A DNA stretch of 64,000 bases. Origin: Oculina patagonica (taxonomy: Eukaryota). The stretch lies in contig NC_135763.1 of NCBI RefSeq assembly GCF_052425735.1, positions 38,130,001 through 38,194,000 on the forward strand. The letters run 5' to 3'. Of this stretch, positions 325 to 24,323 are shown one piece after another (position 1 is the first letter of the stretch; every line of letters starts with the position of its first letter). The notes beneath the pieces are model-generated. The model was not told the origin of the DNA. It ran no database searches and was given only the letters and a program-made list of their open reading frames with translations. The position numbers and the translations under genes were made by a program.

Positions 325-936
325 CTATATTTCACTGATATCCATTGTTTGCAACCTAGGCCTGTCTGGAAAATTAACATCCGCAATCATTTCACAGCTC
401 ATTTCACTTGAACTGTTGCTGGTAGAATATTGATAGTGGTGCGAGCTGTCTGGCTCGAAAGATGGGTTAACGAATTGATGATGTAATTGCATTTGCTCTT
501 AGCTGAAACCGGCTAACACCTGAAAGGTGCTCACTGTAGCAGGAGCCGAGGATACCAGCTCTTCACCAGGCCTGTTGTTTGGCGGACTGTCCTGGCCAGC
601 CTGAGGCCTTGATTCTGGTCTTGTCCAGGAGCATATGCCAGGAGCCGAGGGTACCGGCCCTTCACCAAGCCTGTTGTGTGGCGGACTGGCCTCGCCTGGT
701 CTTGGTTTTGGTCTTGTCCAGGAGCACGTGCCAGTTATTGGTTTGGCTGGTGGTATTGTAGACTCTTCTTTGCGAATGCTAATCAAACTGACTGGGTTGT
801 TACGGCTACTTGGCCTTTCCAACTCTACAATGTCTTTTCTTTGCTGCACGACGTACATCACTAGGATAATGACCACGATTATTAGAATAGTGACAAGCGC
901 CAAATTTAGGCAAATTAAACTTTCTACTGTCTCCAT
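325..936 (-). pseudogene. TM-adaptor-like paralog 1; near-identical to paralog 2 but with a premature stop (145 aa instead of 203 aa)
   Basis: Almost identical to 5173..5784. CAA (Gln) is TAA at 499-501, and the frame continues to the ancestral TAG at 325-327. Splice acceptor (tttag) at 968-970. Could be a truncated functional allele rather than a dead copy. Confidence 0.75.
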
Positions 937-3900
937 TGTTATGGATTGAAGGTTTCTTCTGTAGAAGCTAAAGAAGAGAGAAGAGAAATGAGAGGTTATA
1001 ATTATCAGTAATTACCTCAGTATCAGGAGTTATTGTTTTATTTTTATTTTTATTTTTTATCAATTGTAATTAAATTAGGTTATCCTTAGCGTATTTTTAT
1101 CTGATTGTAATTTAAATCGGGTTTTTATATTTTTACTTTTAATTTCAAATGTAAACGCACTGAGACGTATGTAAAGTGCGTGCTAAGAACTGTTATTATT
1201 ATTATTATGATCGAGCGGTCTGGATACGAGTCCGGGCTGGAGTCATTGGGAGGGGGGAAGACAGTAGAAATATTCGTAACCGCTTACGCCACGGGAACCT
1301 GGATAAGCTCCGGCCTGTTGGGCCACCAGGCTAGCACTCAGACTTTGCCTATTGTTTTCACTGCGCCGCAGTGAAAAAATGGGTAAGAGAATAGCGCAGT
1401 TCTAGAGGTCTGGGTCCAGGGCTGGCTTCAGTCCTTAATTGAACTGTGAATTCCAGCGAACTGTTGGGAAACCTGATAAAACGTTCCAGCCGCCACGCGC
1501 CGGGGACTAGCATCCCATTTAGGGTAATATCATGAATCCGAGCCGCTCCGTTCTACAGAAACAGCCCTCTTGAGCCACTACTCTTCTTCTAAAGGGTTTT
1601 ATTTATCAACTTTACCCAGGGATGTGGCTTGTTATGACCCCGGTTATGACAAACGTAAAACATCGTTACCCTTTTGCCCTTTTAGTCTATCAAATGTCCT
1701 TTCCCGTGCATGTAACTTGGATGTTATCAGTCCGTGCAAAAATACCCCTTCCCTTCAAGCTCTCGGCCTGTTTTGTATTCTGTCAAGTCCACTCTACTGT
1801 TCAATTCGGCTTTTTCGTTACTGTCTTGATGGCGAACCCGCCAGAAATTACTTTTTGACCTCCTTTTAGCAACCACTCAAAACAAGATAACAAATAATTT
1901 TAAGTCAGATTTGATAAAAAAGTAAATACTTCAAAATTACGCAATGTGCTGTAATCACCTTTGGTGCCTTTGTCTGTTCAAGTCACATCCCCGCATTACA
2001 TGTCCAACAGTGTTTCTTTTTGTAGACTGACGTCAATGGTTTTCAATGCAAAAAGTTGTAAACATAATTCGTTTCGAGAGTGAACAGCGCCAGAGGAAAT
2101 ACTTTTGGATATTAGACTCCTATTGCTTAACACTCCACAATATTTCTGGTATTTTTTAATACCACGACAAGCTGGCGTGGTATTTTATTTAACAGAGTAA
2201 GGAGGTCAATTTGATTGCGGAGCTGGAATTCTCTAACGGATGATCGAGCTAACAAATTTTTAGATCGACTAAAGGCTAACAGATGTCATATTTCCCTGTT
2301 GGCTTAGTTCTGAGTCTTAATGGGGTTCCTTTTAAAATACTATATCTCGAAATGAACCCGGAAATGAGCCCATTTGTGACGGCACAGTGGCCTATCCCGC
2401 GCAGCACTCGCACACTGGCGTGACGCAGGTCACATTACAGGTTCAGAGTTATCAGGCTACGTATCTAAATGTAGTGTTGTGATTGACAATAGATCTGATA
2501 GCTATTTATGGCTGGTGAATAATGGCTTCAATTTCATGTGCGGAAATGAAACGTAGAATATTTATACCTAGAACGTAGCAGCTATCCCCTGTCTTGTTAA
2601 ACAAATCAATTTACAATTGTGCGCATGAGTACGACCCTGAAATGTTTTGATTTTTGCCATGAATCAGTTGCGTCGTTTCTCGTGCGGAATTCTGTACATA
2701 TCATAGAAAATACCTAGCTCCTGAGGCTTTGACAACTTGTAAAGTCTAAAGGTTAAGAAAAAAAATCCAGCTTCTAATTTCACGGTACAGTAGTCTGTTA
2801 TTATTTGTGCGTATCACCAGTTTTAATTTCCAGCTGAATACCCAAAGTTAAATTCCTACCTTAAAGATGCAGAAGATTTGTTCACAGTTGGGGGAAAATA
2901 CTGTTCGTATAAAGATTTCCAACAACCTTTCCTACAATGACCGACATACTTCCATTGGGACGACAGTCAGGTCGCAGTGTGAGACACGACGACAGCTCCA
3001 AATACCGGCGCAAACTAATATATGTCACGTGACATGTGAAGCAGTTCGAGGTCACATTTTTGCGTCAAAGTAAAGTACCCCCTTTCGTCACTTCTGCTGT
3101 TGACGATCGTGCAGTGGGTTTTGAGAGAGACAGCAATTGTGGACTTTACTGATTTTTTAACATTACATTTTTTTGTTCGCTATTTATAGATGGATAAAAG
3201 AGATTGGTGCAGAAATAGCCAGCTGTAAAACTATGTGAATAGTCTTCTCAAGAAGCGCCTACTGTGAGGGCTCTTATACTTCTTGTTATCTTTTTCACCT
3301 AATTTACGCAGTTCTAATTTCTCCTCGGTCTTGTCCTTTGCGCATGCAACCAACTACTCTATAGACTACGCCTGCGTAGTACCGTGTAAGGTATAATTCA
3401 GTAAGGTTTAGCAAACAAAAATCATGTAACCAGTCATAACGCTGGATCAACGCTGAAACGGCAATACTGCTTATTCACTTAGATCTAAATAACTGTCAAC
3501 GGTCCGAATTTATTATGACCTTTTGTTGCCTCTGAAAAAATTGATATGTACACGCAATTTCTTAAAAAAGTTATCATTTTACTAGTATTTCAGCCTACAA
3601 AAAATACGACGACACAAGGCACGAAAAAGGCTTTAGAATGTTTTGTGTAGTGCAGTAAGCATTCAGAGTATCCTTGAGTCATAGCCATAGCAGTGATTCA
3701 GTTACATAGTCTGTTTACAGACGTTTCTTTTCTTCTCGCTGGCGTGTGCACGAGGACAGGCGCGAAGGGCAAAGTGTCTATTTTCCCTTTACTCGCCCCC
3801 ACCCCTCTTGCGTTCTCTTTCCATATACTTGTTGCGTTCTCTCAAAGAACTTTAAAGGAAAAAAGGATCTGTAAACAGACAACAGATGCCGAATGAGAGA

Positions 3901-5172
3901 GTACTGGTTAATTGTGATTCAGAATGGAGTTAATACTTCCCACGAAGCCATATTGGCACAGTTCTTCCAGATCCCGCTCCCGGTAAAACGAGTGAACTGG
4001 CAACAAATACGAAAACACCGGTTTGTCTCGTGGAATTCGTGTGATCGATGATTAAAGGGTGCCCAGTTGTCAAAAGTCTACAAATGCGATCTAGTACGAT
4101 CCCGAATAGTTTGTTAGTTACTATATCTGATCTGATCTGGACCGGTACCGAACCGACTGTTTGTAACTTACATCATTCCGGTTTGAACATGACCCAGGCC
4201 GAATAAAGTTCCTGTTTCGTAAAATCCGAAAAATGTAAAATAGTCATTTCATGCATTCCTAATCACGCGTGATAATTTTGATATACTAGAATGAGTCTCT
4301 TTCCGGATCTGGCTATGGCGATAAACTCATCAAGCCAGATCATAAATTCAAAATCTTATCACTCCTGTGAAAGGCATATCACAACCGCATGGTTGGAAGT
4401 AAAAGTGCTTAGTTAGTTGTGCGTTTCTTCTTAATACAACCAGATAAAAAACGATAATTAATATTTTCATGCAAATCAGTTTCAAAAGAAAAACATTTAT
4501 GATGTGATCCTAATACTGATTAGCATGCATAGGCTCTATTGCAAGATTGTTGAAATTTAGTAATAGCTTAACTGAATTTTTATTCTCGCAATGTTTTAGA
4601 ATAGGACAGCATATGTTTTAGAGATTTTTAAACAATTGGCCCACTCGCCCTCGTTTTGCATGAGCTGGAGAGCAAAAAAACTTTAGTTTCGTGTACCTTA
4701 AACCACAAATCAACAAAAAAATTTCTCTTTAAGGACAACGCTTGCGGGCTTGAACGTGGGTTGTAGAAGCGAACCAATCAGATTCGCAGATTTGCAACAA
4801 GATTTACGGAACTGACAATAAGATTTTTCTGGTCTGGCAAGGACAAAGTAAACCAGTCCAGTAACCTATGACGAAAAAAAGAACCTTAACCTCAGAACGT
4901 TTGGGAATAGTATTTGCCATACTTCTTCTCATGTCTTGTTTTCTAACAAGAAATAGTTTTGCAAATGCCTGCAACTGAGAAAAACCGAATCAATGTCTTG
5001 ACAGAAATAAAGTATCCCAAACGGTAACGGCTTCATTTTTTCCCTTTCTGTGATAATGCATTGTTCAATTACGTCATCGACTTCTTTCCTTAAGCCTCGA
5101 GAATATCAATACAAATGAGTTACAGTATACTAGGTGGCGGAGCAGGGGGAGGGGGGCGGGGGGGCAGTTACA

Positions 5173-5784
5173 CTATATTTCACTGATATCCATTGTTTGC
5201 AACCTAGGCCTGTCTGGAAAATTAACATCCGCAATCATTTCACAGCTCATTTCACTTGAACTGTTGCTCGTAGAATATTGATAGTGGTGCAAGCTGTCTG
5301 GCTCGAAAGATGGGTTAACGAATTGATGATGTAATTGCATTTGCTCTTGGCTGAAACCGGCTAACACCTGGAGGGTGCTCACTGTGGCAGGAGCCGAGGA
5401 TACCAGCTCTTCACCAGGCCTGTTGTTTGGCGGACTGTCCTGGCCAGCCTGAGGCCTTGATTCTGGTCTTGTCCAGGAGCATATGCCAGGAGCCGAGGGT
5501 ACCGGCCCTTCACCAAGCCTGTTGTGTGGCGGACTGGCCTCGCCTGGTCTTGGTTTTGGTCTTGTCCAGGAGCACGTGCCAGTTATTGGTTTGGCTGGTG
5601 GTATTGTAGACTCTTCTTTGCGAATGCTAATCAAACTGACTGGGTTGTTACGGCTACTTGGCCTTTCCAACTCTACAATGTCTTTTCTTAGCTGCACGAC
5701 GTACATCACTAGGATAATGACCACGATTATTAGAATAGTGACAAGCGCCAAATTTAGGCAAATTAAACTTTCTACCGTCTCCAT
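5173..5784 (-). CDS. TM-adaptor-like paralog 2: single-pass type III membrane protein, 203 aa, Pro-rich tail
   Basis: N-terminal hydrophobic run LICLNLALVTILIIVVIILVMYVV followed by RK. Two ~33-aa internal repeats (CSWTRP...SAP), an FVNPSF motif and C-terminus ISEI. Pyrimidine tract plus AG acceptor at 5816-5818; candidate upstream exon with donor at 6615. Confidence 0.85.
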   Translation of the reverse strand: METVESLICLNLALVTILIIVVIILVMYVVQLRKDIVELERPSSRNNPVSLISIRKEESTIPPAKPITGTCSWTRPKPRPGEASPPHNRLGEGPVPSAPGICSWTRPESRPQAGQDSPPNNRPGEELVSSAPATVSTLQVLAGFSQEQMQLHHQFVNPSFEPDSLHHYQYSTSNSSSEMSCEMIADVNFPDRPRLQTMDISEI

Positions 5785-8700
5785 TGTTATGGATTGAAGG
5801 TTTCTTCTGTAGAAGCTAAAGAAGAGAGAAGAGAAAAGAGAGGTTATAATTATCAGTAATTACCTCAGTATCAGGAGTCTGGATCGAGCGGTCAAAGTCC
5901 GGGTTCTAGGGTCATTGCGTTGTTTTTTGTTTTTTTTGTTTGTTTGTTTACTCTCACAATGCCTCTTTCCACCCAGGTGTATAAATGAGTACTGACAAAT
6001 TTAATTTTATCTTGCAAACCACTAGCACCTCATCAAGGGGGAGTAAAAATACTCGTAGCCGATTAATGCTGGTGAAACCTTGATAAGCTCCGGTCTGATG
6101 GGCCATTTGCCTCGCACGAGAATTTAACTTAATTTTCACTGCGGCAAGGAAATTCGCCGAGGTGTTATCTAGAGGTCTGGGTCAAGGGGTAGGAGCTTGG
6201 TAAACAAAATGTTTGTGTAATAACGTTCAGCAAATACTTTTTACTTAGAAAAAGTGTGTTCACCAACTTTTGCTCGAATTTGCCGACAGAAGTTCAATTT
6301 TCCAAAAGTTGCCCAGTCTATTGTGTGCGGAAATAACGGGTAAAAATAAACAGATAAAACAAATTAAAGCAGCTATTCCGCGCCTCGTTAAACAAAATCC
6401 ATTTACATTTGTGCTGAGTTCGACCCGGAAATGTTTTGATTTTTGCCATAAATGATCAGTTGCCGAGCCATTTCTCGTGCAAAATCCTGCACAGATTACC
6501 CAAGTCTAAACATTGAGAAAAAATTCAGCTTCTAGTTTTACAGTGCAGTAGTTTGTTATTATTTGCGCGTTACCACTTTTGATCTACAGCTGAATACCCA
6601 AAATTGAATTCCTACCTTAAAGATCTAGATATATTCACAGTTGGTGTAAAGAAGTGTTCTGTATAAAGGGATCCAACAACCTTTTTTACAATGCCCAACA
6701 TGCTTCCATTAGGACGACAGTAAGTTCGCAACACACAGTGAAAAACATGACGACAGCTCCAAACACCGGCGGAAACTAATACATGTCACGTGACATGCAA
6801 AACAGTTCGAGGTCGCTTTTTTGTGTCAAAGTTAATTATCTCCTCTTGTCATAATCCTCTGTTGAGGGTGTTGAGTTTTAAGAGAGGCATCCACTGTAGA
6901 CTCATCTGATTTTAAAGCCCGGCCAGATGGGGGGATACCAAATTTTTTCTTGATATACCTCATTTCTCTCCCCTAAGATACCAAAAAAGCAAAAACATTG
7001 ATAACAAATACCTAAAAATTATTGTAATACAGAACTGACAGAAAACCCTATACAGTAGAACCCCGATTTTACAATCGTCGATTAAACGATATCACGATTT
7101 GACGATACGATTTTTATGTCCCCTTGCCATATCGTAAAATCGGGTTCCACTGTACCTGAATTTTTTTGGCAAAAGCATACCGAATACCTTGGTAAAATGC
7201 ACCCAAGATACCGTAGGGTTCATAGGATAAGTGACGAAATAGAGAGCTGTAATACTTTGTATTTCAGGAGACGGAATTAGACGGAATTCCCCTGTCAGCG
7301 AACTGACAGGGGAATCTGCCAAAATGCTCTGGGCTGATAGTCTCCTTTGCTCATATTCAATCCAACAATGAAGGGAGTAGCTTGGACTTTTATGTGTTTT
7401 GTAGTCGCTTCTTGAGTTAAAACAACAGGTGTTAAGGGTTCACGTAGTAAAGCAGCTCTTGTAAGCTTGTAATTCTGCAAATCCTCTACTGTAGCAGTTG
7501 TTATTGTTTTGGGGACTAAAAAGGGAACTGTTCCTGTTGTATGCCGTGTTGCAACAATGATTGAAATTGTCCACAGACGTACGTTTCTCTGATCTCTCGA
7601 CGAACTTTAGAGAAAATAGGGGGTTGGGAAATTAAAGCCTATGATTGAGACAGCACTGGCTAATTAAAGATCTGATTCATGGTCATCATGGCCATATTTG
7701 GTATAATTATTCCACATCCCGCTCCCGGCCGGCCGCGGCGAAATGAGTGCGGAATCAGACACCAAACACGAAAGCAACCCGGCATTGTTATTAAAAGGGA
7801 TAATTTTAGGCATTAATTAGTTGTTAACATCATTTTGTCTCGTGGCAATCTTGTGATCAAAGGGTGCCCAGCAGTCAAGAGTAAGCCGAGACGTATGTCA
7901 TCCGTTAGTCCATAGTTAAGTCTCGATTAAGTCCTTTAACATAATTTTAACAATGGCTCTCATGCTGTTTACGATTTAGAGTTAATATGCCTGTCCATAG
8001 AGAAAAGTTTTGTCCTTTCACAAGCCGTCAAGCGACCCAGTGCGATCACGAATAGCTTTTTTTGCTTTCGGTCTGATCTGATCTGGACCGGTTACGAACC
8101 GACTGTTTGGACTATCTTACAGTGGAACAAAATTCAATCCGGTTTCGGAATGGGTAACATGAACCAGACAAAGTTCCTGTTTCGTAAACACTGAGACATG
8201 TCAATCAATCTTTACATTCCCGATCTGTGTGATAGTGTGGAACGAGAGTTTTTCCGGATCTTGTCCACTGAGCTAGCTAACGCGATAAGCTCACAAGCCA
8301 GATGAAATCCAAAACTGTATCACTCGGGTGAAAGCCATCAGTGACAACCGCATGACTGGAGGAAAAATGTTCAGTTGCTAACTTTTTTGTGCGTTTATTC
8401 TTAACATAACCAGATAAAATTACGTATAATTTTTAAGCATAATCAATTTCCAGTAGAAAAATATTTATGATACAATTCTAATACTGATTAGAGCGCATAT
8501 TGCTAGATTGTTAAAATCATCAACAGACTGACAAAAAATTATTTTCTGACAATATTTTACAGTAGACTATATCTGAGTGTTTATCTGGTACAACAGACTT
8601 AAAACGCACATGATTTAGAGAATATTAAACTGTTTGACTTACTCGCCCTCGTTTTGTTTGAGCGAAGAGAAAATATTAAAATTTAATGTACTGTATTTTA

Positions 8701-9117
8701 AGGCCCAAATCAACAAAAAAAGTTTTCATTTTAAAGGAGAACACATGGGGCTTGAACGTCAGTTTCTATCAGCGAATTATTAACGATGAGTGAACCAATA
8801 TATAAGATATGTAAATATATTTAAGATGTATAAATCAGATTCGCAGATGAAGGTAAGTTAGCCAGACCTGTAACCTATGATAGAAAAAAAGAACATTCTC
8901 TAAAAAAGTTAGGAAACAAAGTTTAACCATACTCTTCGTCAACTCTTGTTCTTTAACAAGAAATAGTTTTGCAATGAAAAAACCTAATTAATGTCTCAAA
9001 AAATAGTGTGTATTCCTGCAGTAACAGCTATATTCTCCCTTTCTGTGGCGATACATTGTTCGATTAATAATCGACGTCTTTTCGTAAAGCTCAGTCAATC
9101 TCATTTTATAACTGAAG

Positions 9118-9765
9118 CTACGCTATATCAGTAATATCCATTGTCTGTAATCTGGACCTTTCTGGGTTATTAAGAAACGCAAGTTCGCCCCTGTTCTGGT
9201 ACAGCGGTTCTTCTGTTGGATTGTTTTCGTATATTGGTTGTTCCTCCTCCTCATATGCCTCGTTGCTGTATATAGGTTGAGGATCACCTCTGATTTCACT
9301 TGAACTGTTGCTGGTAGAATCTCGATGATCTTGCGAACTGTCTGGATCGAAAGATCGGTTAACAAATTGATGTAACTCTATTTGCTCTTGGCTGGTACCA
9401 GCTACCTGAGAGGTGTTCACTGTAGCAGGGGCCGAGGGTGCCTCTTCGCCAGGTCTGGTGAGATAAGTGACAGTCTCTTCCGGGTCTTGGCGTACAGCAG
9501 ATCGCCTGTTTGCTGGCTTGGCTTGGCCAGGTTCTATGGTGTATCGCATTGCTGAGGAGCTTTCTCGCTTCCTTTTGTACTCGTCTTTAGTTTTCGTGTC
9601 TTGCCTGTTATCATTGGGATCAGTGTAGACAAGGTCTCCATTTCTTGTGAGCTTATTTAAGTCTCGACGAATTCGCCTCACTGTGACACAGAGATATATT
9701 ATGACAATGCAGAGGAGAACACAACAAGCGCACGCCGCCACTGTGAGGATTAATGACAAAGCCAT
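9118..9765 (-). CDS. TM-adaptor-like paralog 3: 215 aa, Cys-rich TM segment, three YxN motifs
   Basis: TM LILTVAACACCVLLCIVIIYLCVTV then RRIRR. Tail is homologous to paralog 2 (SAPATV, QFVNxSF, STSNSSSE, RLQTMDI) with added PIYSN, PIYEN, PLYQN. Acceptor ttttccttttcag 3 nt before the ATG. Confidence 0.88.
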   Translation of the reverse strand: MALSLILTVAACACCVLLCIVIIYLCVTVRRIRRDLNKLTRNGDLVYTDPNDNRQDTKTKDEYKRKRESSSAMRYTIEPGQAKPANRRSAVRQDPEETVTYLTRPGEEAPSAPATVNTSQVAGTSQEQIELHQFVNRSFDPDSSQDHRDSTSNSSSEIRGDPQPIYSNEAYEEEEQPIYENNPTEEPLYQNRGELAFLNNPERSRLQTMDITDIA

Positions 9766-11859: not shown

Positions 11860-12345
11860 CTTGCTAAACGACTCAGCGAGTCACTCGAGGTGCTGTGTAC
11901 AGTTAGCCTCGTGGACGGTAACGGATTTTTTTTTCCTGTGACGCGTTCGTATGAACACTAAACTTGAACAGTGCTGTAGTAGGTGGCCCGACTGATTCTC
12001 GGACAATTGTGATTAAACAGCCTTGCCGTAGTGCGGCAGAGAAAGACTGTGAATTCAGCCTGAATTCTCTGGAGCTTGGATGTGAAGTGTGTTGTGCTGA
12101 GGCAGCTGTCTGTTGCCGACGGCGCTGTTAAGCGTGATCTTCAGTGACTGCCGGTTAGAATCTCAATGTTCTTCAAGACTCGGTGATTTTCTGACTCCTG
12201 CGAATTGCCTACCAATCTTCCACGCACGTTGCTTGTATTTGAGCGCAAACTTTTGCTAAGGCAGCAGACCTGGTCGCCTTTGTTGTCGCGAAATTCAAAG
12301 ATTGCGTTTGGGAATAACCCTTTGACACTAATAATATTTGGATTC
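11860..12345 (-). other. Candidate non-coding first exon (5' UTR) of paralog 3
   Basis: Minus-strand donor AAG|GTACGT at ~11859, preceded by ~485 nt in which I found no minus-strand ATG. The upstream boundary is unknown. Confidence 0.5.
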
Positions 12346-14898
12346 CATCAGTTACGCAACGGTGATAATGTATACAGTATAATCTCAAGTATGCATTTCA
12401 ATTGGATGAAGATTTAAGCGTGATTTCAACAGGAAGTCTTTCGAAATATTGAGCTTTATTCTGGCTACAGTGCAAGGAAACTACAAAAACTGAAATAGAT
12501 CGCGCCTTGCTTCCTTCTGTGTTAATAACCGTTCTTTTTTCTAAGCTTACTTCCAAATAAACGATAAAATTTTACAAATTCCCTTAGACATGTCAATATA
12601 GATTGTTGTTCACGCAATAACAATACCCGAATAGCCGGAAGGCCTAAAATAACTTGGCTTTAGTCGCAGTGCAATATCTGAATAAAAATTCTAAAGTTTA
12701 CTTGTCCAACTAAACACAGCTACTCGTGGCATCGTATTTTGAATCATCTCTGGTCATTTTCTCGGTGACAAAGACATGTTTTGACCAAACAAGAACTAAG
12801 GCATTTAATCCCTTAGAGCGAAACTGATAAAGGGGGTTTACCCTAATTTTGACCCTTTGCTGAAACGGGGTTGAAACCGCAAGTTGACAAAAAGCAAGTT
12901 GTTTTCGACATTGATGCAGCTTTGCATACATATGTCTTCAAATTATCACGAAATTCAAAGCTGTCACCGAAGACTTCTAATATAGTGTGTTGCATATGTG
13001 TGTGCTGTGCATAACGTTAAGAAACCAAGACAAATGTACAATTGTAAAAAAAAAAAGATGCCATTACCGGACATTACAAAATATGTCAAAATATCTAACC
13101 GGGAGCATGTAATATGTATTACATCTTTTTATTGTTTAAATTATAGTTTTAACATTTATTTTCTACCATATGCAGTGATTTGACTTGTATAATGATTGCT
13201 TAAGTTTCAACAAAGAATATAAATATTCAAACAACTATCAGCTGCACTGTCATGCAAAACCAGATCTGTCTCAACAAGCTCAAGAACACAAAGTACAGAA
13301 CCCATGTAGAGTAAACAGGATGCACATTCTTCAAGTAACACAAACCCGGAAGGTACTAAGCAGTGTTCAACACTTTCATAAGCAATCCCTTATCTCTGCA
13401 AATCTCGAGACCATGGTCATAACAAAATTTTTAGGCTCGTTTCAAAGAGTTTCGTTCTCTTTAAGCTAAGCAATTCTTGCGCGCTGAACCGCTTTGGAAA
13501 TTTCCTTCCTTGTAACTGATGAGCTTCTTAATAAATATGTCAACTGATGAGTCATGGCTTTAAACTGAATATAATTAAGTGTAGTGATTTCAGAATATCA
13601 CTGAAGCTGCTTGAAAGTGAAACTAGACGGTAATCAGTAAGGGACACCGGATTGACGTCATTAAACTTAAGGGAGTTTATGTAAAAACATGCCCCTTCAA
13701 TGAATCATCAATATTTTCGGTACAAGTGATTCTTTCTGTAAAAGAAAGAAGCACTATTGTTTAAATTAAAGGTTTCAATTTAAGCACTTTTTCTTTCGAA
13801 GTGCAAATGAGCCATTAGAAGTATGAATGTTATTCAATTATAATGATCTTTAGGGTGGGGGTTTGCCCCATCGTTTGACTGAGAGGCATTTTTTCCTTGT
13901 GCTCTTGAGAAAGGATATCTGAAGAAAGATCGACGCAATGTCTGTTATTTTCTGTGTTTTATTCAGAGCGACAAGTTACTACTGAGTTTACCCATTCGGT
14001 GTTCCTTGTGGGAATCGGCAAAAAGAAAATTACAAACTATTACAAACTTTATGTAGCGGTATTTCTCCGTAGCTTGAGTCTTCAGGACTCCCTTGCTATA
14101 GATAAGGCTCAACGTCACGTTTTATCACAGTCATGCTAGCGACTAAATGTTTTTTGAGAAACTTTTTAGGGGAATTTTATACAGCTTTCGAAACTTAAAA
14201 AAAAAGTTGCTGACGAAGTGACAAGAGACGAACCATAGCTAACCATCGCAAATTTGATGAGCAATATGACGCAATCATAAGCATAACAGATACGTGTAAC
14301 CCGGAATGATCAGTACAAGCCAAGCGAAGAAAAGAAAAGGAGATCTTTCCTTTTTATTGTGCCTGCACTTAAGCGTTGAAAACGGTATCCAGAAGTCAAG
14401 CCTCTCGGGGGCTTTGAAAGCGTATAAAAACGCCTCCAGCTAAAGCCAGCAATAGATCAAATATTGTAAGATACTGCACCCGAGTATGTTATGCTTACGA
14501 CATGCATATAAACCATCTCTCAATTGCAAACCGACTGTTGCACGATTACGAGTATTTAAGTATTTCACAAGCCTCTTGCTGACTTGGCAACAAGAGGTAT
14601 TCCTGTGATAATTTCAGAGGCAGGTAGCTCCTGAATGAGGCCGGGTACAAAGAAATCTTTTAATTTAATTTTAAGTACCCGGAACAATTCCCTGTTCCTT
14701 TACTTCCTTAACTTACATATTCTTATCAAACAGCCTATGTGTAGACGAACTCTCTTCCTTTCCTTGTCTTTTTTTCGTTGACATAGTGTTGTTAAAAAAT
14801 ACAAATTGTGTATACGCAAGTCACATATCAATGAATTCTTCCAGTCCCAGACCTTACTTAACCGGTGCACCGCATTTCACTGTTGACTGGCCAACTCT

Positions 14899-15276
14899 TT
14901 ATTCATTTAGCTCAAGTTCAAATCCTTCGTTACTTTCTTCCTTATGATGCCCCTCTGTCTTAGCACCTTCCCCTGAGCGTTCTCCTGTATTTACAAACTG
15001 TGTTGGTAAAGGAGGATGTGGGTTGCGATGCAGCACTGTGATCGTCTCACCAGCCACCGGTTCCGCTCGGAGAGGCAACAGTTCTCTCAGCGGTAGAAAC
15101 TCGGTGCTGTTACGGTTACAAGAATCGTTTACCATTTGACAAAGATGTTGGATTTTCTTTTGAACTCGTCTCTGGTGTATAAGAAGATAAATCACTGCAA
15201 TGCAAAGTAGCACTTGGCATACGCACCCCACCACCGACACGGCTAAAACGACGTACGTGAGATCCTGCAGCTCCAT
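14899..15276 (-). CDS. TM-adaptor-like paralog 4: 125 aa, tyrosine-free tail
   Basis: Likely start MELQD after the acceptor at 15294-15296. TM ...VLLCIAVIYLL matches paralog 3 VLLCIVIIYL. Tail contains QFVN. The leader AACCTTCAAT...ATGGAG is shared with paralogs 1 and 2. Confidence 0.75.
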   Translation of the reverse strand: MELQDLTYVVLAVSVVGCVCQVLLCIAVIYLLIHQRRVQKKIQHLCQMVNDSCNRNSTEFLPLRELLPLRAEPVAGETITVLHRNPHPPLPTQFVNTGERSGEGAKTEGHHKEESNEGFELELNE

Positions 15277-15518: not shown

Positions 15519-15893
15519 TGCAAGTCATGAGCAAAAACGAAATATATAGCTGAAGTTTTACTTGCTAATATTTTACATGTAACGATTACTTGCTTAGCTG
15601 TAACCGACCTATCGTTTGCCAAGTTTAAAAGAACCCTATACGGTATTCAAAGAAGAAATCATTAACGTAACACGCCATTGTTAAATTAACATAGTCTAGA
15701 TAATACTGCAAGTCATAGGCAAAAACGAAATATGTAGTTGCGGTTTTACTAGCTATCATTTTGAATGTTATGATTACTTAATTAGCTGTAAACGTTCTAT
15801 CGTTTGCCAAGTTTAAAAGAACGCTTTATCTAAATTAGAAATCCTTGACGTAACACGCCGTTGCATTGTTACGTTTACACAGTCTAGATAATA
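15519..15893. repeat. Two-copy diverged tandem repeat (~190 bp unit) in the intron of paralog 4
   Basis: tgcaagtcat...ctatcgtttgccaagtttaaaagaac...agtctagataata occurs twice head-to-tail. Confidence 0.85.
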
Positions 15894-16521
15894 CAGATAC
15901 CTACTTACTATATTGCTTCAGCTTCTTCGGTATTGGTTAAACGACCAAGAAAGGTTCAGGAAATTTACATTGGTCCTTTTAACTTTCACCATGTCTTACA
16001 TTACATTCGGAGACCTCCATAAACCAAACTGAACTTGAGGTGTATTAATGTTCCCATCATAAGAAACAATTGCCTCCAGTGGCGACTGACGGCTTTTATG
16101 TTGTACCGCAGATAGAATTATTTACCTTGTGATTACTCATGCGTTTGAATTAAAAAACAGACTCTTGATCGATGTAATTAGCTTCCATTATTATTCTATT
16201 ATTCCAAACATCATCTATGTGTATTCACGTGATAAGTGTCACAGCGTTGAATCAGCCTTTTCAGTGATCTGGTTGACAGCCTTCAAAGTAATTGTCAGTG
16301 CAGTCTACAACAGCGGAAGCATAGTTGGCCGTAAATATCAAAACCTTTCTAACAGTTCATTGATATTAAAAACATACTTATCTAAGAAAAAGTTTTGCAC
16401 GAGGGTAATTTAAAAAACTAGTAACCTGTTTGGTCCTGTTTACATTAATTTTATGATGAGCAAACTGGAAAACCTTCTGATAATAAGCCAAAATGTACAA
16501 ATGAAAGGTTGCAAGAACATA

Positions 16522-16681
16522 CAGTTGAATTTTGATAACTCGAACCTTCAAGGGAAATCTAAAAAGATTCGAATTATCGGGGGTACGAGTTGGCGAGAGT
16601 AAAATTAGTAAGAAAATGACCTAAAGGGGCATCGAAAAAGGTTCGAGGTAGCGGGAGGTTCGATTTATCGGGATTCAACTG
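16522..16681. mobile_element. Tc1/mariner-type MITE
   Basis: TA|CAGTTGAAT ... ATTCAACTG|TA termini. Confidence 0.7.
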
Positions 16682-17388
16682 TAAATTATCTCGGTCTCTT
16701 CTCTTTCATTAAAGATTCTGTTGATTATAATTCTGTAGTTGGGGTCAATAAGCGCTCGATATTACCTTCGCTTCGGGCCTTATAGCACTGGGGTGCTCCT
16801 TATAGTGGACTATACGGGGAAGCTCCGCTGGAAAGGGGTTCCTTTTTCAACGGGAGATATATAAAGTGGTAGGCGTATCACGAGCTCTAGATAAGGATAG
16901 GGAAAACTGTCATTTAAGTATTTATGGGCCAAAACATCTTAAACAGACCCACCGAGTGGTCAGGATTCACCTTAGTATTTTAACGGTTATTCGAATAAGA
17001 AGTTTAGAAAAGGGATACGGTATCCTTACTGTAGAAAGGGGTACCATTTTCTTCCGTCCGTTTCTGTTAAAATGGTATGTAAAAGGATAAGGGGATGGAT
17101 CTTGGAGGGGAGACTCCCCGTATAAAATATTTTAGAACACCCCCCTCCTCCTTCAGGCCTTATCGTCTTCTTATTAGCTATCATATATGTTTCTTGTTGT
17201 AACGTGTTTATAGAGTCGGTTTTCGTAATCCGTTTGTATTGAAATTAACCTTGATGGGCAACTCCTGTTTACTAACGGCAAGCGTTCCCGATACCGCTCA
17301 CCAAAAAAGCCGTTAAAATTGACCTTGCTTCTAACGTTTTCCAATAAAATAAAAAATGTTCAAATTTAGATGCGATTGTTTTCTAGAA

Positions 17389-19344
17389 CTAAACATCAAT
17401 TATGTCATTACTATAGATCGCAAATTCGTTTTGACTTTCAAGTGCGGGATTGCCATTGCACGTAGCTGTTCCATGTCGAACGTTTATGTTGGCATATATA
17501 GGACAATTGTCAGAATATTCATCGCCAACGTTTTGAGCATTCTCCTGGTTGGCGTAAAACGCTTCTGGCTGCGCAGTAGCAGGTATTTCGCAGTATAAAT
17601 CATCATTGTCGCCATCAACGTTAGCGTAAATCTGCTCGGTGTTTTGATGTCCTTTGTCTACTACATCTCTTGTATTGGCGTGGTACTCCTCAACAGCGCA
17701 CTTTCCTTGAACTTTGTTTTCCTGTACAGCTGTTTCAAATCCAGCAGCGGATTTGTTGTCGCTGTCAGCATACTGTGCCGAGTCGCCTGTCCTCTTCTGA
17801 AGGAGGCTTCGGAGTTGTAAAACAATGCTAGAGGGCCTTTCTGTCACCTCTTGGGTAGTAGCATAGTCATACATGTACTGGTCTTGCTTCCCATCGCTTG
17901 GTTTCATTTTACCATTGCCTTCTAAAACACGTTCAACTTGATAATCAGGGGTCCTTGGAACGTTGGTGCGCGCTATATTAGCAAGCTGGTCCACTTGGTT
18001 GACAACTTCGTACTCGCTGTCATTTTGATCTTCATTCTTTGAGACTCCATTACTCTTCAAGTGTTCCCCTGAGCGTTCCTGAGTTTGCGTAAAGTCAGGA
18101 CCACCGTTAGGTCTGTTCTTCTCCAGCTGTTCTACGTGCTTGGTGATTACGTATCCATTTTTATCTACAGCTACATTATCCAGGGACGACATGCGTTCTT
18201 CGGTCTTCTTCGTCTCGTCGGCTTGTGTCCAACCAGTGCTTCTCTTCTTCTTGGTTCGTCGTTTCGCTTTTGGTCGCATTTCATTAGGGGTAACTTTTCC
18301 AGTCTCGTCGCCATTACGAGTTATCCCTTTCTCGGGGCCCTCTGATAAGATGGGTGATTCTTCAAAATTGAAAACCGCAGCAAAGTCACGTTCATTCTTA
18401 TTCGGTAGCATTTCACCATCCACGATTCCACTATTTGCAATAGCTTTGTTTTTCTCCGCTTCTTGGGACTCTTGTTTATTATTTCGTTGCTCGTCACTCT
18501 GGCTTTTCATCAAATTAGGTTGCCCTTTGTAGAAGGCAGCTTTTTGTTCCCTGTTCCCCTCAATCAAAACTACGCATTCAGGTTTGCCCGCGTCTGATCC
18601 CTTTTCAGCTTCTGAGATGTCTTTCTCCTTTGAACGGATTTGCACTGTATTTGTTTTATTTTTGCTGGAGATGTTTTCATTCTCGTCAGGACCCAAATCA
18701 CCCTTGTCATCTAAAGGCATCGTTTCAAGCTCCGTTTGGGTGGCATCTTCAAGGCGTTCCGTGTTGTTATCAACATCACCATCGGCACTGCTTACACTAA
18801 TGTAAATTCTTCTCTGGTCATGTTTTGTATCCTTTACAGGGCGATCACTCGAAGAGATTGCCACAATCGTTGAGTTACTATCAACTATTTGCAGGTATGA
18901 TGTGACTGGGACATCGGGAACGGGAGTTGGTTCTTCTTGCGTCTTTGCATCATCAACTGATGCTTTACCCTCTACTGGCGACATGGAAGCAGTTTCTTCC
19001 GAACTCGGGTGAGGTGCGACTACATCCGAACGGACTGATGCATAAGCAAAAGCTCTATGCATGTGTTTCCAGGAATTCACAATGTCTGAATCTGCAGCTT
19101 GCTGATTGTAAAATACCAAAGGAAGTGGCGAGGAAGGGCTTTCCACTTCTGGTTGATTTTCTTTGGTCACTGGTGTTTCTTCGCAGGAGACCAATCTGCA
19201 ATAAACGCTCCGTCTCTTGGATATGCTGTCTACTCGATGATGGATTTTTCCAAGCCAGAAAATGAGAAACAAAACGATTATCCATAGCAGTGATGACAAA
19301 CAAAGAAGAACCAGGGCAATTTTAGAGACAAAACCTTCATCCAT
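17389..19344 (-). CDS. TM-adaptor-like paralog 5: 651 aa, long acidic disordered tail with many Tyr motifs
   Basis: Uninterrupted 1956-nt ORF. TM IALVLLCLSSLLWIIVLFLIFWL. Motifs TSYLQI, SEYEVV, YDY, QIYAN, FYAN, PIYAN, AIYSN. Acceptor at 19379-19381. Confidence 0.92.
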   Translation of the reverse strand: MDEGFVSKIALVLLCLSSLLWIIVLFLIFWLGKIHHRVDSISKRRSVYCRLVSCEETPVTKENQPEVESPSSPLPLVFYNQQAADSDIVNSWKHMHRAFAYASVRSDVVAPHPSSEETASMSPVEGKASVDDAKTQEEPTPVPDVPVTSYLQIVDSNSTIVAISSSDRPVKDTKHDQRRIYISVSSADGDVDNNTERLEDATQTELETMPLDDKGDLGPDENENISSKNKTNTVQIRSKEKDISEAEKGSDAGKPECVVLIEGNREQKAAFYKGQPNLMKSQSDEQRNNKQESQEAEKNKAIANSGIVDGEMLPNKNERDFAAVFNFEESPILSEGPEKGITRNGDETGKVTPNEMRPKAKRRTKKKRSTGWTQADETKKTEERMSSLDNVAVDKNGYVITKHVEQLEKNRPNGGPDFTQTQERSGEHLKSNGVSKNEDQNDSEYEVVNQVDQLANIARTNVPRTPDYQVERVLEGNGKMKPSDGKQDQYMYDYATTQEVTERPSSIVLQLRSLLQKRTGDSAQYADSDNKSAAGFETAVQENKVQGKCAVEEYHANTRDVVDKGHQNTEQIYANVDGDNDDLYCEIPATAQPEAFYANQENAQNVGDEYSDNCPIYANINVRHGTATCNGNPALESQNEFAIYSNDIIDV

Positions 19345-22300
19345 CGAGATTCCAGGAGCCCTTTCCAGAAACGTGAGGCTAAAGACACAAAAAATATTGG
19401 TTAGAAGACCAAACGAGATCGATCTTTACTAGCGCGTGTTGCGCTACTTTATACTTATTTTGAGCCAATACACGAACCATAAACTATAACGTGGACTCAT
19501 GTTGGCAAGTGAGAATTTCCCATCCTTATAATCAATGGGAAATTGGTATAACCAGCAAAAGGAAAGTTCAGTGTCACGATATTTTCTCGCGTCAGAAGGC
19601 GTGACTCTTCTGTTGAAAACTGCAGGCTGAAACGATTTCCGAACAAAAAGGTGTTTTATGTTCTCTTCCGCATGTCCAAGAACCCAAGCCTCCTATGCTG
19701 GCTTTCTTTGGTCTCGTCGAGCCTAACGAGAGTCTGCATTGAAGGCCATAGAACAGTGTCTTTATTTTTGCACTTGTACATTGTTGAAATTTTTTGCCTG
19801 ACCCCAGTTCTTGCACTACATCGAAAGAAAATGCTATTATAATTTATCACTTCCAGCTTTTTAGCCGTCCTAGTCACCTGCCTAGTTTCTCCGTTATTTT
19901 TTGGTTTTTATTATTCATATAAAAGTATCTTTTCTTCGTCATTAGTCAAGAATGTAATAAGTGTCTTTTCTGTGCTATTCTTCTCACCGCATACAGACTT
20001 AAAGACTTTGAATGTTTGACCCCAACTGATTAGAAGAGCCTTAGCCTTGCGTGTATTCTTCCGCCAGCATAAATACGGGATTTGCATGGTCTTGACGAAA
20101 AGGTTAAGCGTTTTAAAAGCATTCTTCTGACAGATATTTGTTGGAGTAAAGTTGCACAAACCACGCAATAGAAACGCGAAAGGACGAGGAATAGAAATTC
20201 GTTTAACAGACATCTTTATCAGTTACATCATCAAACAAAAATGTAAAATCATAGGCCCAAGTACTGAGGAAGTCCTGTGAACCGGCTTTAGGATAGGATT
20301 TCACTATTTCGGGAAATTACTTGAAATAAATTAAACTTCAATGTAGTAAAGTTGACACACAACTCCAAAAGGTTTACAAATAGTCTTACTGCACTGTTAC
20401 AATTTCTTAATACATCAAAATGGAAGGCCCAAATTGTTCAAGGGAAGAATAACACTAACGGATGAATAACACTATCCAGTCGATAGTGCATATGTTTTCG
20501 TAAACACAGCTTATCCAATGGATAGCGATTTATCCAGTGGATGGTATTATGCACCCTTTGAGGAACCGGAGCCACATGGATTAATTATCAAGAAATGCGC
20601 CAGGACAGGCATTGCACCCATTGTGTGTACAGATCATTTTTTAACACTTTTGAAGTGAACATGGGCCACCAAATCGTCATTTCTCTAGAACGGTACTGTC
20701 ATTGTTATACAGTAAAATCCCGATTTCTCGAAGTTGTATTTTCACATTTCCCGATATCTCTAAGCGAATTTTTTTTATTTGGGAGTTTGGACCAAGCGAA
20801 CAAGCAACTCTACCCGACCAGGACCCCACTTAACGGACTTCCCATTTATCGAAAAACTTTTCGTTTCCTTTAAATGTTCGAGAGATTGAAATACCACTGC
20901 ATTTCTCGGCAAATGATTGTGATATGACAATAGCAAATCTAAGCTGTCGGATTTGTTATTTATCAGCAGGATGAATCAACAGACAAATCAAGTTACGTTT
21001 CGTCCACAGGCCTGTACTGATGTGTGAGTATGGAAGCGAGAAGTACACAGTGTGCTGACAGTAGCTTGAGATGCCTACCTTTTCCACTTGCTTTAATGAA
21101 TGAATGAATATAACGTGAATATAACGCCGTATCAACCAAATCGTGTCCTCGTTGCTCTGCTAAATAGTATGGAAGGTTAAAAATAAGGGATTAAAATTTA
21201 CTGCGTAATTGGAACACGGAACTTTAAGCTTGCGGTTCACAGGGTCAACTGGCATTGCATAACAGTAGCCAGTTGCATTGTGTAATCAATATTGCGGGAT
21301 TCTTACTAAGACATTGCTTACATATTTGGTACAAAATCAACTAAGATAACCATGTAACGTACGGTTGTAACAACAGATGCTGTCGCCTGCAGTCCACCAG
21401 TAAAGCGAGTGGTGGAGTGGTGGGCTGCTGGCGAGCACTCAGATTCTGGTAAACCTGGATTCCAGATATTCAATTTAAGGGAAACGACGAAGAAAGTAAT
21501 GGGACCGATTACGCCTTTCAATGCTTAAAAACAAGGAAGGGGAAAACGTTTTGCTCTTTCGAGCGGCCTAGTTGCACTTTTTCAACAAATAGATCCGTAA
21601 TTGCATGGTAGTATTCCATATTGGCTAGTCTTAAATGACCTTGCATGTGCGCCTGGCATGTAAGATGCAACCCCGGCCCTTTGGAGAAGAAACCGCGTTT
21701 TTCTCGTGGCTGAGCTGTTTCTGCTTGTAGTTTGACGTTTTTGTGTAAAGTGGGTATTTTTTCTTCCATTTTATGGATGCATGGAGAAACGTGTTCTCGT
21801 CCCGGTTCTTGTCTGTTAAATTGACAATAGTTGCTAAACAAACAAGTTGGATAGCTGCGTATCTGGGTTAGTTGAAGCCATAAAATATCTCTTATTTTAT
21901 TAACTGATCTCAAATTTTAATTACAATTCTGAGGTTAACTTTAATTTTATTTAACTAAATATATATTATATATACAAATCTGTGATCAATGTTTATAGTT
22001 CATGTAAGATATAGTTTTTTTATTATTTTATTGGATCTTTCTTGGCTTAAAGTCCTTTGCAGAATCTTAAGCTTCAGATGTATATATGATTGTTCGTACA
22101 TTCCTTTATATTCTTGGCAGTTTCCCACAGTTATTTTTCCAGTACATACAATATTTGTCATGCCGGTTTCGAAATTTGTGGCGGTATAAGTACTAACAAA
22201 ATGGCCATGTTGCATGTTGTCTTCTTAAGTTAGGTGGCTTTAAAAATCGCTTACACTTTCATGAATGTAAAATTCTGAACGCATTAAAACTCGTTTTGGA

Positions 22301-22667
22301 TACTCGGGCAAAACGAAACTTTTTTATATATATTTATATGTTCGACCTATATATGAAGTGTTCAAGACGCGAATATTAAAATATACCAGGTGAGTGCCTC
22401 TTGTTCAATTGGACGATGACCAATTTTGACCTTTTCAAACGCTCAGTTGCCAGCTATATTGGCAATTTATATACAACTTTAGAGTCCATTATTTACAAAC
22501 GGGTTTATGAAAGATCAGTGCTTCTCGCCTTAGATCATCTAAGGCGAGAAGCATGATATTATGTACTGGCAGCATATGATTCTTGACGGCTAAAATTATT
22601 AAAAAATCTTTTGGAAAACCAACTGTTTTTGGCTAAATTGGAATGCTTTTAGACCCTTTTAACTGCA

Positions 22668-24323
22668 CTAAACATTCATCATATTGTTGTTGTCGTAAAT
22701 CGGACTTTCGCTGTAAACGAAAGGATTGTCGTTACACATAGAAGATTCCTGTTGAACTTCTCTATTGGCATAAATTGGGACATCATCGGGATAATCAACA
22801 CTGGCACCAACATTTGCGACAATCTCCTGGTTGACATAAATCACTTCTGATTGAGTCTCAGCGTTGTCATTACTATTGTTGTCATTGATATTAGCGTAAA
22901 TCTGGTCAGTGGTGTTTTTCCTCTCTGTTGTTAACTGGGAATCCTTGCTGTCAGTGTCTTTCGCCTCATTCGCTCTTTCGTGGATTACAGTGAGATTGTC
23001 ATGGCAACCTTCAGTGGAGGACTCGGCGCCAGGCTCAGCTCTACCAGTGACGTAGTTTGTCTGCAGCTTAGCAGCATCACTAACAGGTGATCTGGACCAG
23101 TCTTTCACCTCTCGGGCTGTGATGTAGTCGTAGCTGTTTTCATCTTCATAACTTGGATCAACTGGCCCACCGCTTTCTGAATTACCTCCAGCCTGGGACC
23201 TGTACACTGGAGTATCGTTGTTAGCAGCTGCGTCTTCCACGTGTTGTACAATGAGATATCCATAGCCATCTTCATCGGCACTCTTTGAGATTCCATTACG
23301 TTTCATCTTTTCACCAGGATGAGTTTGTTGGAAATCAGAAACAACGTGCGCGTTATGTCCAAACGTTGTTAATGTGCCAACTTGCTGACTAGAAAGGTAG
23401 CCGTATTTGTCTTCTTCTAGATTATCCAGGGGTGATACATGGCCATCTTTATTGTATACACCATCTGCCTTGACCCTTCCATCGGAGTGCGTCTCAGCTC
23501 TCTTCTCCTCGTTGTGAAGCCGTTTCTCTTCCGACTCAGTTTTAATGGGAATAAGGTATAAGGACTCGTCTTCATGAGGAGGAATCTCATTCTCAGTTGA
23601 TATGTCAGAATGGATAACCACGAGGTATCCGTGGTCATCTTTATTTGTCCTGTCTTTTTGCCCCTCTTGGGAAGACTTTTCTCTTTGGCGCCTGTCACCC
23701 TTCATTTCAGTCACATCTCCGTCAACAGAGGACTCTCCTTGACAAAACTGCACTTGTGATGAGTCAACACAGGGTTGTGCGTAGGTGTTATCTTTGGCGC
23801 TCTTTAAACTCATGTACGTCTTCCTCAGTTTGCCATTTGTGACATGTCTTTCAGGGTGATCACAAGAGGACTGTTGTGTTGTTGAGCTGTCATCGACGTT
23901 TTGAAGGTATGCTGCATCCTCTATGTCACTGGATGTTGTTTTCTCTTGTGTTTTTGAGCCATGATCTGATTTTCCATCCTCTCCTTGTGCCACAGAACTG
24001 ACAAATGAGGTTTCTTGTAAATCTGAACGCGGTTCATCTCCATCGAAACCCAGCGGTCCATACGCAGCAGCACCAGTAAAATGATTCCAGGAATTTATTT
24101 TGTTTAAATCTGAAGGCGCTTCCTTGTTGGAGATGACCAGAGGGAGTGAGCAGGTGTTCTTGGATACGTTATCAACTCGATGTTTTATTTTTCTCAGCCA
24201 AAAAATGAGAAACAAAATCAACAGCAATAAGGAAGAAAAGAAACATAAAAGAACCACTGAGGCTTGGAAGACAAAATCTTCATCAATGGAAATTCCAAAA
24301 GGGTTCTCCACACAGGACTTCAT
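22668..24323 (-). CDS. TM-adaptor-like paralog 6: 551 aa, paralog of 17389..19344
   Basis: Start MKSC lies 1 nt after the acceptor ctttag (24325-24327); the ORF-track extension to 24428 is intronic. TM VVLLCFFSSLLLLILFLIFWL. Collinear Tyr motifs QIYAN, VIYVN, PIYAN, PIYDN and YDY. Confidence 0.92.
   Translation of the reverse strand: MKSCVENPFGISIDEDFVFQASVVLLCFFSSLLLLILFLIFWLRKIKHRVDNVSKNTCSLPLVISNKEAPSDLNKINSWNHFTGAAAYGPLGFDGDEPRSDLQETSFVSSVAQGEDGKSDHGSKTQEKTTSSDIEDAAYLQNVDDSSTTQQSSCDHPERHVTNGKLRKTYMSLKSAKDNTYAQPCVDSSQVQFCQGESSVDGDVTEMKGDRRQREKSSQEGQKDRTNKDDHGYLVVIHSDISTENEIPPHEDESLYLIPIKTESEEKRLHNEEKRAETHSDGRVKADGVYNKDGHVSPLDNLEEDKYGYLSSQQVGTLTTFGHNAHVVSDFQQTHPGEKMKRNGISKSADEDGYGYLIVQHVEDAAANNDTPVYRSQAGGNSESGGPVDPSYEDENSYDYITAREVKDWSRSPVSDAAKLQTNYVTGRAEPGAESSTEGCHDNLTVIHERANEAKDTDSKDSQLTTERKNTTDQIYANINDNNSNDNAETQSEVIYVNQEIVANVGASVDYPDDVPIYANREVQQESSMCNDNPFVYSESPIYDNNNMMNV

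Follow-up and report, generated by a model that had tools for sequence, protein, structure and literature searches.

A tandem array of open reading frames (ORFs) in the stony coral Oculina patagonica raises the question of whether transmembrane adaptors of the LAT and PAG type exist outside vertebrates. The six ORFs (P1 to P6) lie on the minus strand at positions 325 to 24323 of a 64-kb window, which is the whole stretch of chromosome CM126640.1 (GCA_052425735.1) that was analyzed and to which all positions below refer. The chromosome measures 38.5 Mb, and base 1 of the window was placed at record base 38,120,001. The intracellular parts of phosphotyrosine signaling (Src, Csk, Syk, Grb2, and Shp2) are old; membrane scaffolds have been described mainly in vertebrate immune cells, and the transmembrane adaptor class is, to our knowledge, usually taken to have arisen in vertebrates. 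A preliminary description of this locus had proposed a cluster of ectodomain-less, tyrosine-motif membrane proteins resembling these adaptors. Sequence comparison indicates that the genes belong to a real, scleractinian-wide, uncharacterized, and previously undescribed family, and that its most likely activity, carried by P3, P5, and P6, is that of a membrane-anchored phosphotyrosine scaffold, a reading to which we assign a probability of about 0.5.

Architecture of the predicted proteins

All six same-strand genes of the preliminary description were recovered as minus-strand ORFs, and their products share one layout, namely, a stub of 4 to 22 residues followed by one transmembrane helix, a basic juxtamembrane helix, and a disordered tail. 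Each protein has one strong hydrophobic segment near the N terminus (Kyte-Doolittle score over 19 residues, 2.8 to 3.4), with cysteines in or near it, and the basic juxtamembrane strings quoted earlier (RKDIVELER, RRIRRDLNKL, RRVQKKIQHL, KIHHRVDSI, and KIKHRVDNV) are all present. Asp, Glu, Lys, and Arg are absent from all six hydrophobic segments, the stubs are neutral or acidic, and the residues that follow the membrane segment are basic; by the positive-inside rule, the proteins would be type III single-pass proteins with the N terminus outside and the C terminus inside. AlphaFold2 models computed with family alignments contained a single long helix (residues 2 to 42 in P3 and 3 to 44 in P5), outside of which the predicted local distance difference test score mostly stayed under 60 for P3 and under 50 for P5. 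No Pfam match was obtained for the six proteins at an E value of ≤1 or for 23 and 21 relatives at an E value of ≤0.1, no PDB relative was found by sequence profile, and no catalytic or binding domain was detected by Pfam, PDB profiles, or AlphaFold2. Hydropathy, AlphaFold2 (P3 and P5), and Pfam agree on the arrangement first described, in which a stub, a membrane segment with cysteines, and a basic segment lead into a tail without a folded domain.

Within this common plan, P2 (coding exon 5173 to 5815 and ORF 5173 to 5784, with the acceptor at ∼5815 and the ATG at 5784; 203 amino acids [aa]) has the stub METVESL, the juxtamembrane string RKDIVELER, and a proline-rich tail that ends in RLQTMDISEI and contains no YxN motif (tyrosine, any residue, asparagine). 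P3 (9118 to 9768, ORF 9118 to 9765; 215 aa) starts with MALS and has a cysteine-rich membrane segment ending in YLCV, then RRIRRDLNKL and a disordered acidic tail, in which YxN motifs at Y166, Y179, and Y189 precede GELAFLNNPE and RLQTMDITDIA. P4 (14899 to 15293, ORF 14899 to 15276; 125 aa from MELQDL) carries three cysteines in its membrane segment, followed by RRVQKKIQHL and a short tail that keeps the P3-type ETITVL and QFVN and has no tyrosine cassette. P5 (17389 to 19378, ORF 17389 to 19344; 651 aa) joins the stub MDEGFVSK, the membrane segment, and KIHHRVDSI to a tail of ∼600 disordered residues, and a database protein of 651 aa (P0001) is identical to its ORF. P6 (22668 to 24324, ORF 22668 to 24323; 551 aa from MKSC) has a conserved stub of 22 residues, then the membrane segment, KIKHRVDNV, and a disordered tail; F9, G10, and D14 of the stub are invariant and Cys4 is near-invariant, which hints at dimerization or contact with a partner receptor. 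Cysteines on the cytosolic side are family specific: in the P3 family, a conserved YLCV precedes RRIRR by four residues; no such cysteine is present in P1 and P2; and P5 and P6 have a conserved cysteine ∼15 residues past the membrane segment (VYCRL and NTCSLP).

Gene structure and the question of an ectodomain

Each of the six ORFs is preceded by a polypyrimidine-AG splice acceptor 1 to 34 nucleotides (nt) ahead of the ATG, as the preliminary description had stated. Its further statement that the whole coding sequence lies in one exon goes beyond what DNA by itself can show, with the frame open from acceptor to ATG in P1, P2, P3, and P5; one coding exon per gene is the most likely structure. 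The ORFs might then be the terminal exons of larger receptor genes, whose ectodomain exons would lie upstream and possibly be shared and alternatively spliced. We regard this as very improbable. The intron-spanning database gene calls that favor it (566 aa for P6, 135 aa for P4, and 416 aa for P3) and the upstream coding exon in the RefSeq model of P2 lengthen the proteins by only ∼5 to 39 residues, without a signal peptide or domain, and the 416-aa call, the sequence of which was not seen, is probably a fusion of P3 and P2. A fusion of neighbors is also present in the Porites evermanni model P0056 (CAH3026109.1, 336 aa), an annotation artifact in which a P4-like tail is joined to a P3-like gene.

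The RefSeq model of P2 (P0041, LOC144657782, 242 aa) is the P2 ORF plus 39 N-terminal residues, of which 28 come from an exon at 6618 to 6701 on the minus strand, located by tblastn with the N terminus of the model, and 11 from the stretch between acceptor and ATG. The 28 residues contain no signal peptide or domain, and since the P1 counterpart of this exon (2868 to 2938) is frame-shifted, it is probably a 5′ untranslated region (5′UTR). A 41-nt element at 6761 to 6801, 60 nt upstream of this RefSeq first exon, is 93% identical between O. patagonica and Desmophyllum and is likely a core promoter or 5′UTR element. For P5, a block at 21079 to 21250 on the minus strand, 1.7 kb upstream, is shared with two other corals, as is the donor at its end (AAAG|GTAGG). 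It lacks a conserved ATG and contains stops in the phase that would join it to exon 2, and it is a candidate noncoding first exon or promoter. A signal peptide for P5 was considered and rejected: the hydrophobic in-frame extension in two relatives (P0003 and P0008) results from translating through the intron's polypyrimidine tract, and O. patagonica has no ATG there.

Conservation among relatives speaks further against missing upstream exons. Across at least five other genera, nearly every relative of P3, P5, and P6 aligns its start methionine in one and the same column, and the stub residues after it are conserved (MD or ME in the P3 and P5 families and MK[ST]CEE.LFGISIDE in the P6 family). 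Gene models that start at the stub exist in Pocillopora damicornis (XP_027055523.1, 204 aa), Acropora millepora and Acropora muricata (227 aa), Orbicella faveolata (LOC110063674, 509 aa), Desmophyllum pertusum (OS493_006577, 209 aa), and Porites harrisoni (231 aa). Moreover, a hidden Markov model (HMM) of the P3-type family, searched without a length limit against 1.84 billion representative proteins, returned only 18 relatives, of 138 to 260 aa plus one of 553 aa; they share the same architecture, none of them carries an ectodomain, and those with an organism name are all from corals. The match begins within the first 8 residues in 15 of the 18. Two others have short N-terminal extensions, without a signal peptide or domain, so that P0047 matches from residue 24 and P0050 from residue 39; the last, P0046, lacks its N terminus and opens within the basic juxtamembrane segment. 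At the P6 end of the array, a caspase gene transcribed divergently lies only 4.9 kb from P6, and the interval contains no long ORF. The earlier claim that there is no ectodomain is thus supported, at the level of conservation and gene models, by the relatives and by independent models in five other coral genera.

Conservation of the tyrosine motifs

P3, P5, and P6 contain 3, 4, and 4 YxN motifs, respectively, exactly as first counted, all within the last 80 residues. This C-terminal clustering exceeds that in shuffled tails (P = 0.001 for P3, 5 × 10−5 for P5, and 0 of 20,000 shuffles for P6). The label of six tyrosine-motif proteins consequently needs narrowing, since it holds for these three, and P1, P2, and P4 are without the cassette.

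Conservation of individual sites was scored in 16 full-length sequences for P3, 11 for P5, and 21 for P6, against a background of 54 to 58% mean tail identity to the reference. In P3, Y189 (context EP-I/L/V-YxN-R/T-GELA) is present in 16 of 16 sequences with Asn at +2 in all, and Y166 in 12 of 16. Y597, Y617, and Y644 of P5 are kept in 91 to 100% of sequences, and Y496, Y518, and Y543 of P6 in 100%, with Asn at +2 in all at each of these sites; P6 has another YxN at 476. Also invariant in P6 are Y233 (DHGYLVVIHSD), Y256 (ESLYLIPI), Y356 (GYLIVQHVE), Y170, Y181, and Y398. The residue at −1 is aliphatic in nearly all YxN sites. The preliminary description had staked its proposal on conservation of the tyrosines in orthologs, and they are conserved (YxN tyrosines of P5 and P6, 91 to 100%; P3 Y189, 16/16).

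Conserved tail motifs need not be phosphotyrosine switches, and PIYxN, GELAxxNNPE, TMDIS.I, and YxxV/I of the YxxPhi type might serve trafficking and sorting or phosphorylation-independent partner binding. That would cast the proteins as cargo or as regulatory subunits within a channel, transporter, or adhesion complex. Among the motifs of P5 and P6, several do fit YxxPhi (YANV, YCEI, and YANI), although the three conserved motifs of P3 (YSN-E, YEN-N, and YQN-R) do not. The conserved C-terminal blocks reach well past the tyrosine itself, and P2 and P4 retain the membrane segment, the juxtamembrane segment, and the C-terminal blocks without any YxN. In a language-model atlas, the look-alikes of P3 and P5 are A36R, SCIMP, GAPT, LIME1, and PAG, at scores of 0.81 to 0.88 that are leads only, and opalin, FAM163, and stannin, which count in favor of this explanation, appear at similar scores. 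What makes this explanation unlikely in our judgment is the pattern around the tyrosines: Asn at +2 is kept in 100% of relatives at six sites, and the +3 residue is not hydrophobic at five. Retention of Asn at +2 without a hydrophobic +3 residue therefore points to a reader of the +2 asparagine, which is the hallmark of Grb2-family SH2 domains, whose ligand is phosphorylated YxN (pYxN).

The first YxN of P5 (Y573) behaves differently, keeping Val at +3 but having Asn at +2 in only 36% of sequences. Together with Y584, it forms a pair, Y-x-x-V, seven residues, Y-x-x-I, that is conserved in 11 of 11 sequences, P5 itself included. The conserved content of P5 is hence three YxN motifs plus a pair resembling the immunoreceptor tyrosine-based activation motif (ITAM), because Y573 keeps its Val but seldom its Asn. 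The ITAM form is YxxL/I, 6 to 8 residues, YxxL/I, and the first +3 residue of the P5 pair is Val. The pair is absent from P6, which lost the second of the two tyrosines, and from the P1-P4 family.

This pair and the conserved P6 stub would be the working parts if the proteins were signaling subunits that, as DAP12, FcR-gamma, and CD3-zeta do, associate noncovalently with distinct ligand-binding receptors, and not free scaffolds of the LAT type. The 11/11 conservation of the pair, the unusual conservation of the 22-residue stub with its invariant F9, G10, and D14, and a stub cysteine that could form disulfide dimers are all consistent with such subunits. None of the six helices, however, has the charged transmembrane residue by which DAP12-type subunits pair, the first half-site has Val instead of Leu or Ile, P6 is without the second tyrosine of the pair, and the tails of 500 to 600 residues are far longer than those of ITAM subunits. 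We consider a subunit role improbable on these grounds.

A candidate phosphotyrosine scaffold

As membrane-anchored scaffolds, the proteins would come from separate genes that each combine a short 5′ exon with a single coding exon. A membrane-proximal tyrosine kinase would phosphorylate the conserved tyrosines of P3, P5, and P6. An aliphatic residue at −1 suits Src-family kinases better than Syk/ZAP-70, and most of the coral motifs have one. A Grb2-type SH2 adaptor would dock at the pYxN sites, and other SH2 proteins, such as those of the PLC-gamma, SHP2, or Syk type, at the Y-[LV]-x-[VI] and YLIP sites and at the ITAM-like pair of P5. Phosphorylated Y-L/I/V-x-V/I and Y-L-I-P resemble PLC-gamma and SHP2 ligands, and the SH2 domains that a Syk-type kinase carries in tandem could bind to a YxxV-x7-YxxI pair. 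P6, with putative PLC-gamma-type and Grb2-type sites, would be the most LAT-like member; P5 would add an ITAM-like unit, and P3 would be a minimal Grb2-type adaptor. P2 and P4 retain the membrane part along with the C-terminal block and might act as regulators or as proline-motif scaffolds; P1 is a recently truncated copy. Candidate partners exist in the phylum: Hydra has and expresses Grb2, Crkl, Sos, and Shp2, which are older than animals (PMC7260276).

The acylation, the phosphorylation, the binding partners, and the biological role are putative, and a role in immunity, symbiosis, or allorecognition is speculation. Several observations weigh against the scaffold reading. Half of the paralogs (P1, P2, and P4) have no tyrosine cassette, and the CxxC palmitoylation motif is absent at the membrane border, the conserved cysteine of P5 and P6 being ∼15 residues past the membrane segment. 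A short tyrosine motif within a disordered tail may also be bound by partners of another kind, and the atlas scores are, as said, only leads. The readable Logan/ENA contigs were all collinear with genomic DNA through the acceptor or broken at an ATA microsatellite, and none was complementary DNA; a literature search found no paper on cnidarian transmembrane adaptors and none naming these loci or accessions.

Families, distribution, and constraint

Searches found 13 relatives for P5, 28 for P3, and 29 for P6, in Acropora, Porites, Pocillopora, Orbicella, and Desmophyllum; those with names span both major scleractinian clades. The named counterparts, including Acropora millepora LOC114960020, Pocillopora damicornis LOC113682560, and Orbicella faveolata LOC110063674, are all annotated as "uncharacterized" or "hypothetical." The preliminary description had called the family cnidarian; it is established for stony corals, and named sequences do not carry it beyond them. 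The ratios of nonsynonymous to synonymous substitution rates (dN/dS) against other corals were 0.23 for P3, 0.31 for P4, 0.40 for P2, 0.55 for P5, and 0.45 for P6. Gene order is kept as well: P4-like, P3-like, and P2-like genes follow one another in Desmophyllum, where the P4 counterpart starts with MDLQDL; a P6-like gene and then a P5-like gene are found on another coral contig; and the P4-P3 adjacency extends to Porites (Complexa clade), as the fusion of a P4-like tail to a P3-like gene in the P. evermanni model implies.

A single family of six, as first proposed, was not upheld, and the genes form two families. P1 to P4 can be aligned with one another through the transmembrane and juxtamembrane pattern, ETVTYL/ETITVL, QFVN, a serine-rich acidic patch, and RLQTMDI. 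P5 and P6 align along their whole length, and their tails are clearly homologous (99.2%). Between the two, hhalign of the P3-family and P5-family profiles gave 77% probability over the transmembrane and juxtamembrane helix only, and tail-only profiles matched over just 7 to 12 residues around PIYxN at 3 to 19% probability. Shared gene structure, strand, and adjacency nevertheless suggest a common origin of the two families by tandem duplication.

P0050, P0051, and P0054 are more divergent members. Of these, P0050 lies, in its genome record (L018), 6.4 kb downstream of another ORF with an N-terminal transmembrane segment and a basic juxtamembrane stretch (the two ORFs are at L018:2411-3586 and L018:10001-10660). 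Tandem clusters of such proteins may be more widespread than the named corals.

Duplication and truncation of P1

P1 (ORF 499 to 936, minus strand) has 145 codons and ends at the TAA at 499 to 501, past which its frame remains intact to a P2-type C terminus and a stop at 325 to 327. It is 95.5% identical to P2 in DNA over 1 kb, with a single CAA-to-TAA difference at codon 146 of P1 relative to P2, and the synonymous divergence (dS) between the two is 0.03 both before and after the premature stop. P1 is a recent, 99% identical duplicate of P2 that was truncated by a nonsense mutation. A database protein of 168 aa (P0047) ends at the same GFS position as truncated P1, differing at two residues and in its first exon; because it ends at the same point with two differences, the truncated form cannot be put down to a read error, and a further truncated copy or haplotype probably lies outside the window. 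Both genes also contain an internal tandem repeat of ∼100 nt (∼33 aa) around GTCSWTRP-x-PRP, at 5385 to 5582 in P2 and 540 to 734 in P1, which is present as a single copy in P0040 of a related species.

Neighboring genes and other features of the locus

The caspase-RER1-chordin neighborhood reported for the cluster was located in the window. The caspase gene, on the strand opposite to the cluster, has a CARD exon at 29300 to 29647 (plus strand) and a caspase C14 exon at 36204 to 37085 (plus strand). A Rer1-family exon follows at 42763 to 43098 (plus strand), and a CHRD (chordin) domain exon lies at 52804 to 53106 (minus strand). An N run of 200 bases at 55720 to 55919 is an assembly gap. Inside the caspase-gene intron, between the CARD and C14 exons, the interval 31684 to 35745 (minus strand) holds a 944-aa ORF with reverse transcriptase, RNase H, and integrase domains, the pol of a long terminal repeat retrotransposon, and an adjoining 404-aa ORF without a Pfam match.

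Between P4 and P3, a block of 1.4 kb (12188 to 13622) shows 67.5% identity with the corresponding intergenic stretch in Desmophyllum pertusum (L006:6234-7629), and part of it matches a second Desmophyllum place (L006:4402-4776). A check for a hidden coding exon revealed no conserved ORF in the block, which could be regulatory DNA kept by conservation, an ancient repeat, or the P3 first exon.

Significance and comparison with known systems

Single-pass proteins with tyrosine motifs are unsurprising in themselves. If the scaffold role is true, these genes would be the first example of transmembrane adaptors outside vertebrates and a clear case of convergent evolution of the class, and they would offer a handle on coral cell-surface signaling, including immunity or symbiont recognition. 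A conserved coral-wide family supplies concrete candidates for the assembly of signaling complexes at the plasma membrane, and its small single-coding-exon genes are easily cloned and have counterparts in model corals. If the role is not confirmed, a well-defined family of conserved disordered membrane proteins would still be in hand. Only tentatively would we go further and propose that stony corals independently evolved LAT/PAG-type adaptors that couple surface receptors to Grb2-Sos-Ras and to PLC-gamma/Syk-type pathways.

The stub, signal-anchor transmembrane segment, basic helix, and disordered tail that make up the vertebrate transmembrane adaptor class are all found in the coral proteins, in keeping with the preliminary description. 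The proteins are built like a transmembrane adaptor and are members of no known adaptor family, so the resemblance to LAT and PAG is architectural only. No match was found to the Pfam families LAT, LAT2, PAG, LIME1, SCIMP, GAPT, SIT, and LAX with the six proteins (E ≤ 1) or with 44 family sequences (E ≤ 0.1), and the lack of homology to LAT, PAG, LIME, SCIMP, and GAPT fits the convergent origin that had been suggested.

DAP12, FcR-gamma, and CD3-zeta are likewise ectodomain-less single-pass proteins, to which the YxxV-x7-YxxI pair of P5 (11/11) and the stub cysteine of P6 add some likeness; the coral proteins differ from them in the uncharged membrane segment, the Val of the first half-site, and far longer tails with many other motifs. 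Vaccinia A36R (OPG164) has a short stub, a single transmembrane segment, and Src-phosphorylated tyrosines that recruit Nck and Grb2. In the atlas, it ranks first for P3 and P5 alike. The likeness is one of composition and architecture only, as this viral protein has no detectable homology to them. PAG1/Cbp, LIME1, SCIMP, and GAPT share the overall layout and are among the nearest language-model clusters, but they give no profile match, and a docking site of the Csk or SLP type could not be assigned in the coral proteins. LAT and NTAL/LAT2 differ from the coral proteins in several respects. None of 44 family members has a Pfam LAT match, and sequence homology is lacking; there is no CxxC at the membrane border, the −1 residue is aliphatic instead of acidic, which points to Src-type rather than Syk/ZAP-70-type kinases, the tails of P5 and P6 are 2 to 3 times longer, and, judging from named sequences, the family does not extend past stony corals. 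With LAT and NTAL, nonetheless, the coral proteins share a stub of a few residues, one transmembrane segment, a disordered acidic tail, and several C-terminal YxN motifs, and the upstream Y-L-V-V and Y-L-I-P motifs of P6 resemble the type of the PLC-gamma site of LAT.

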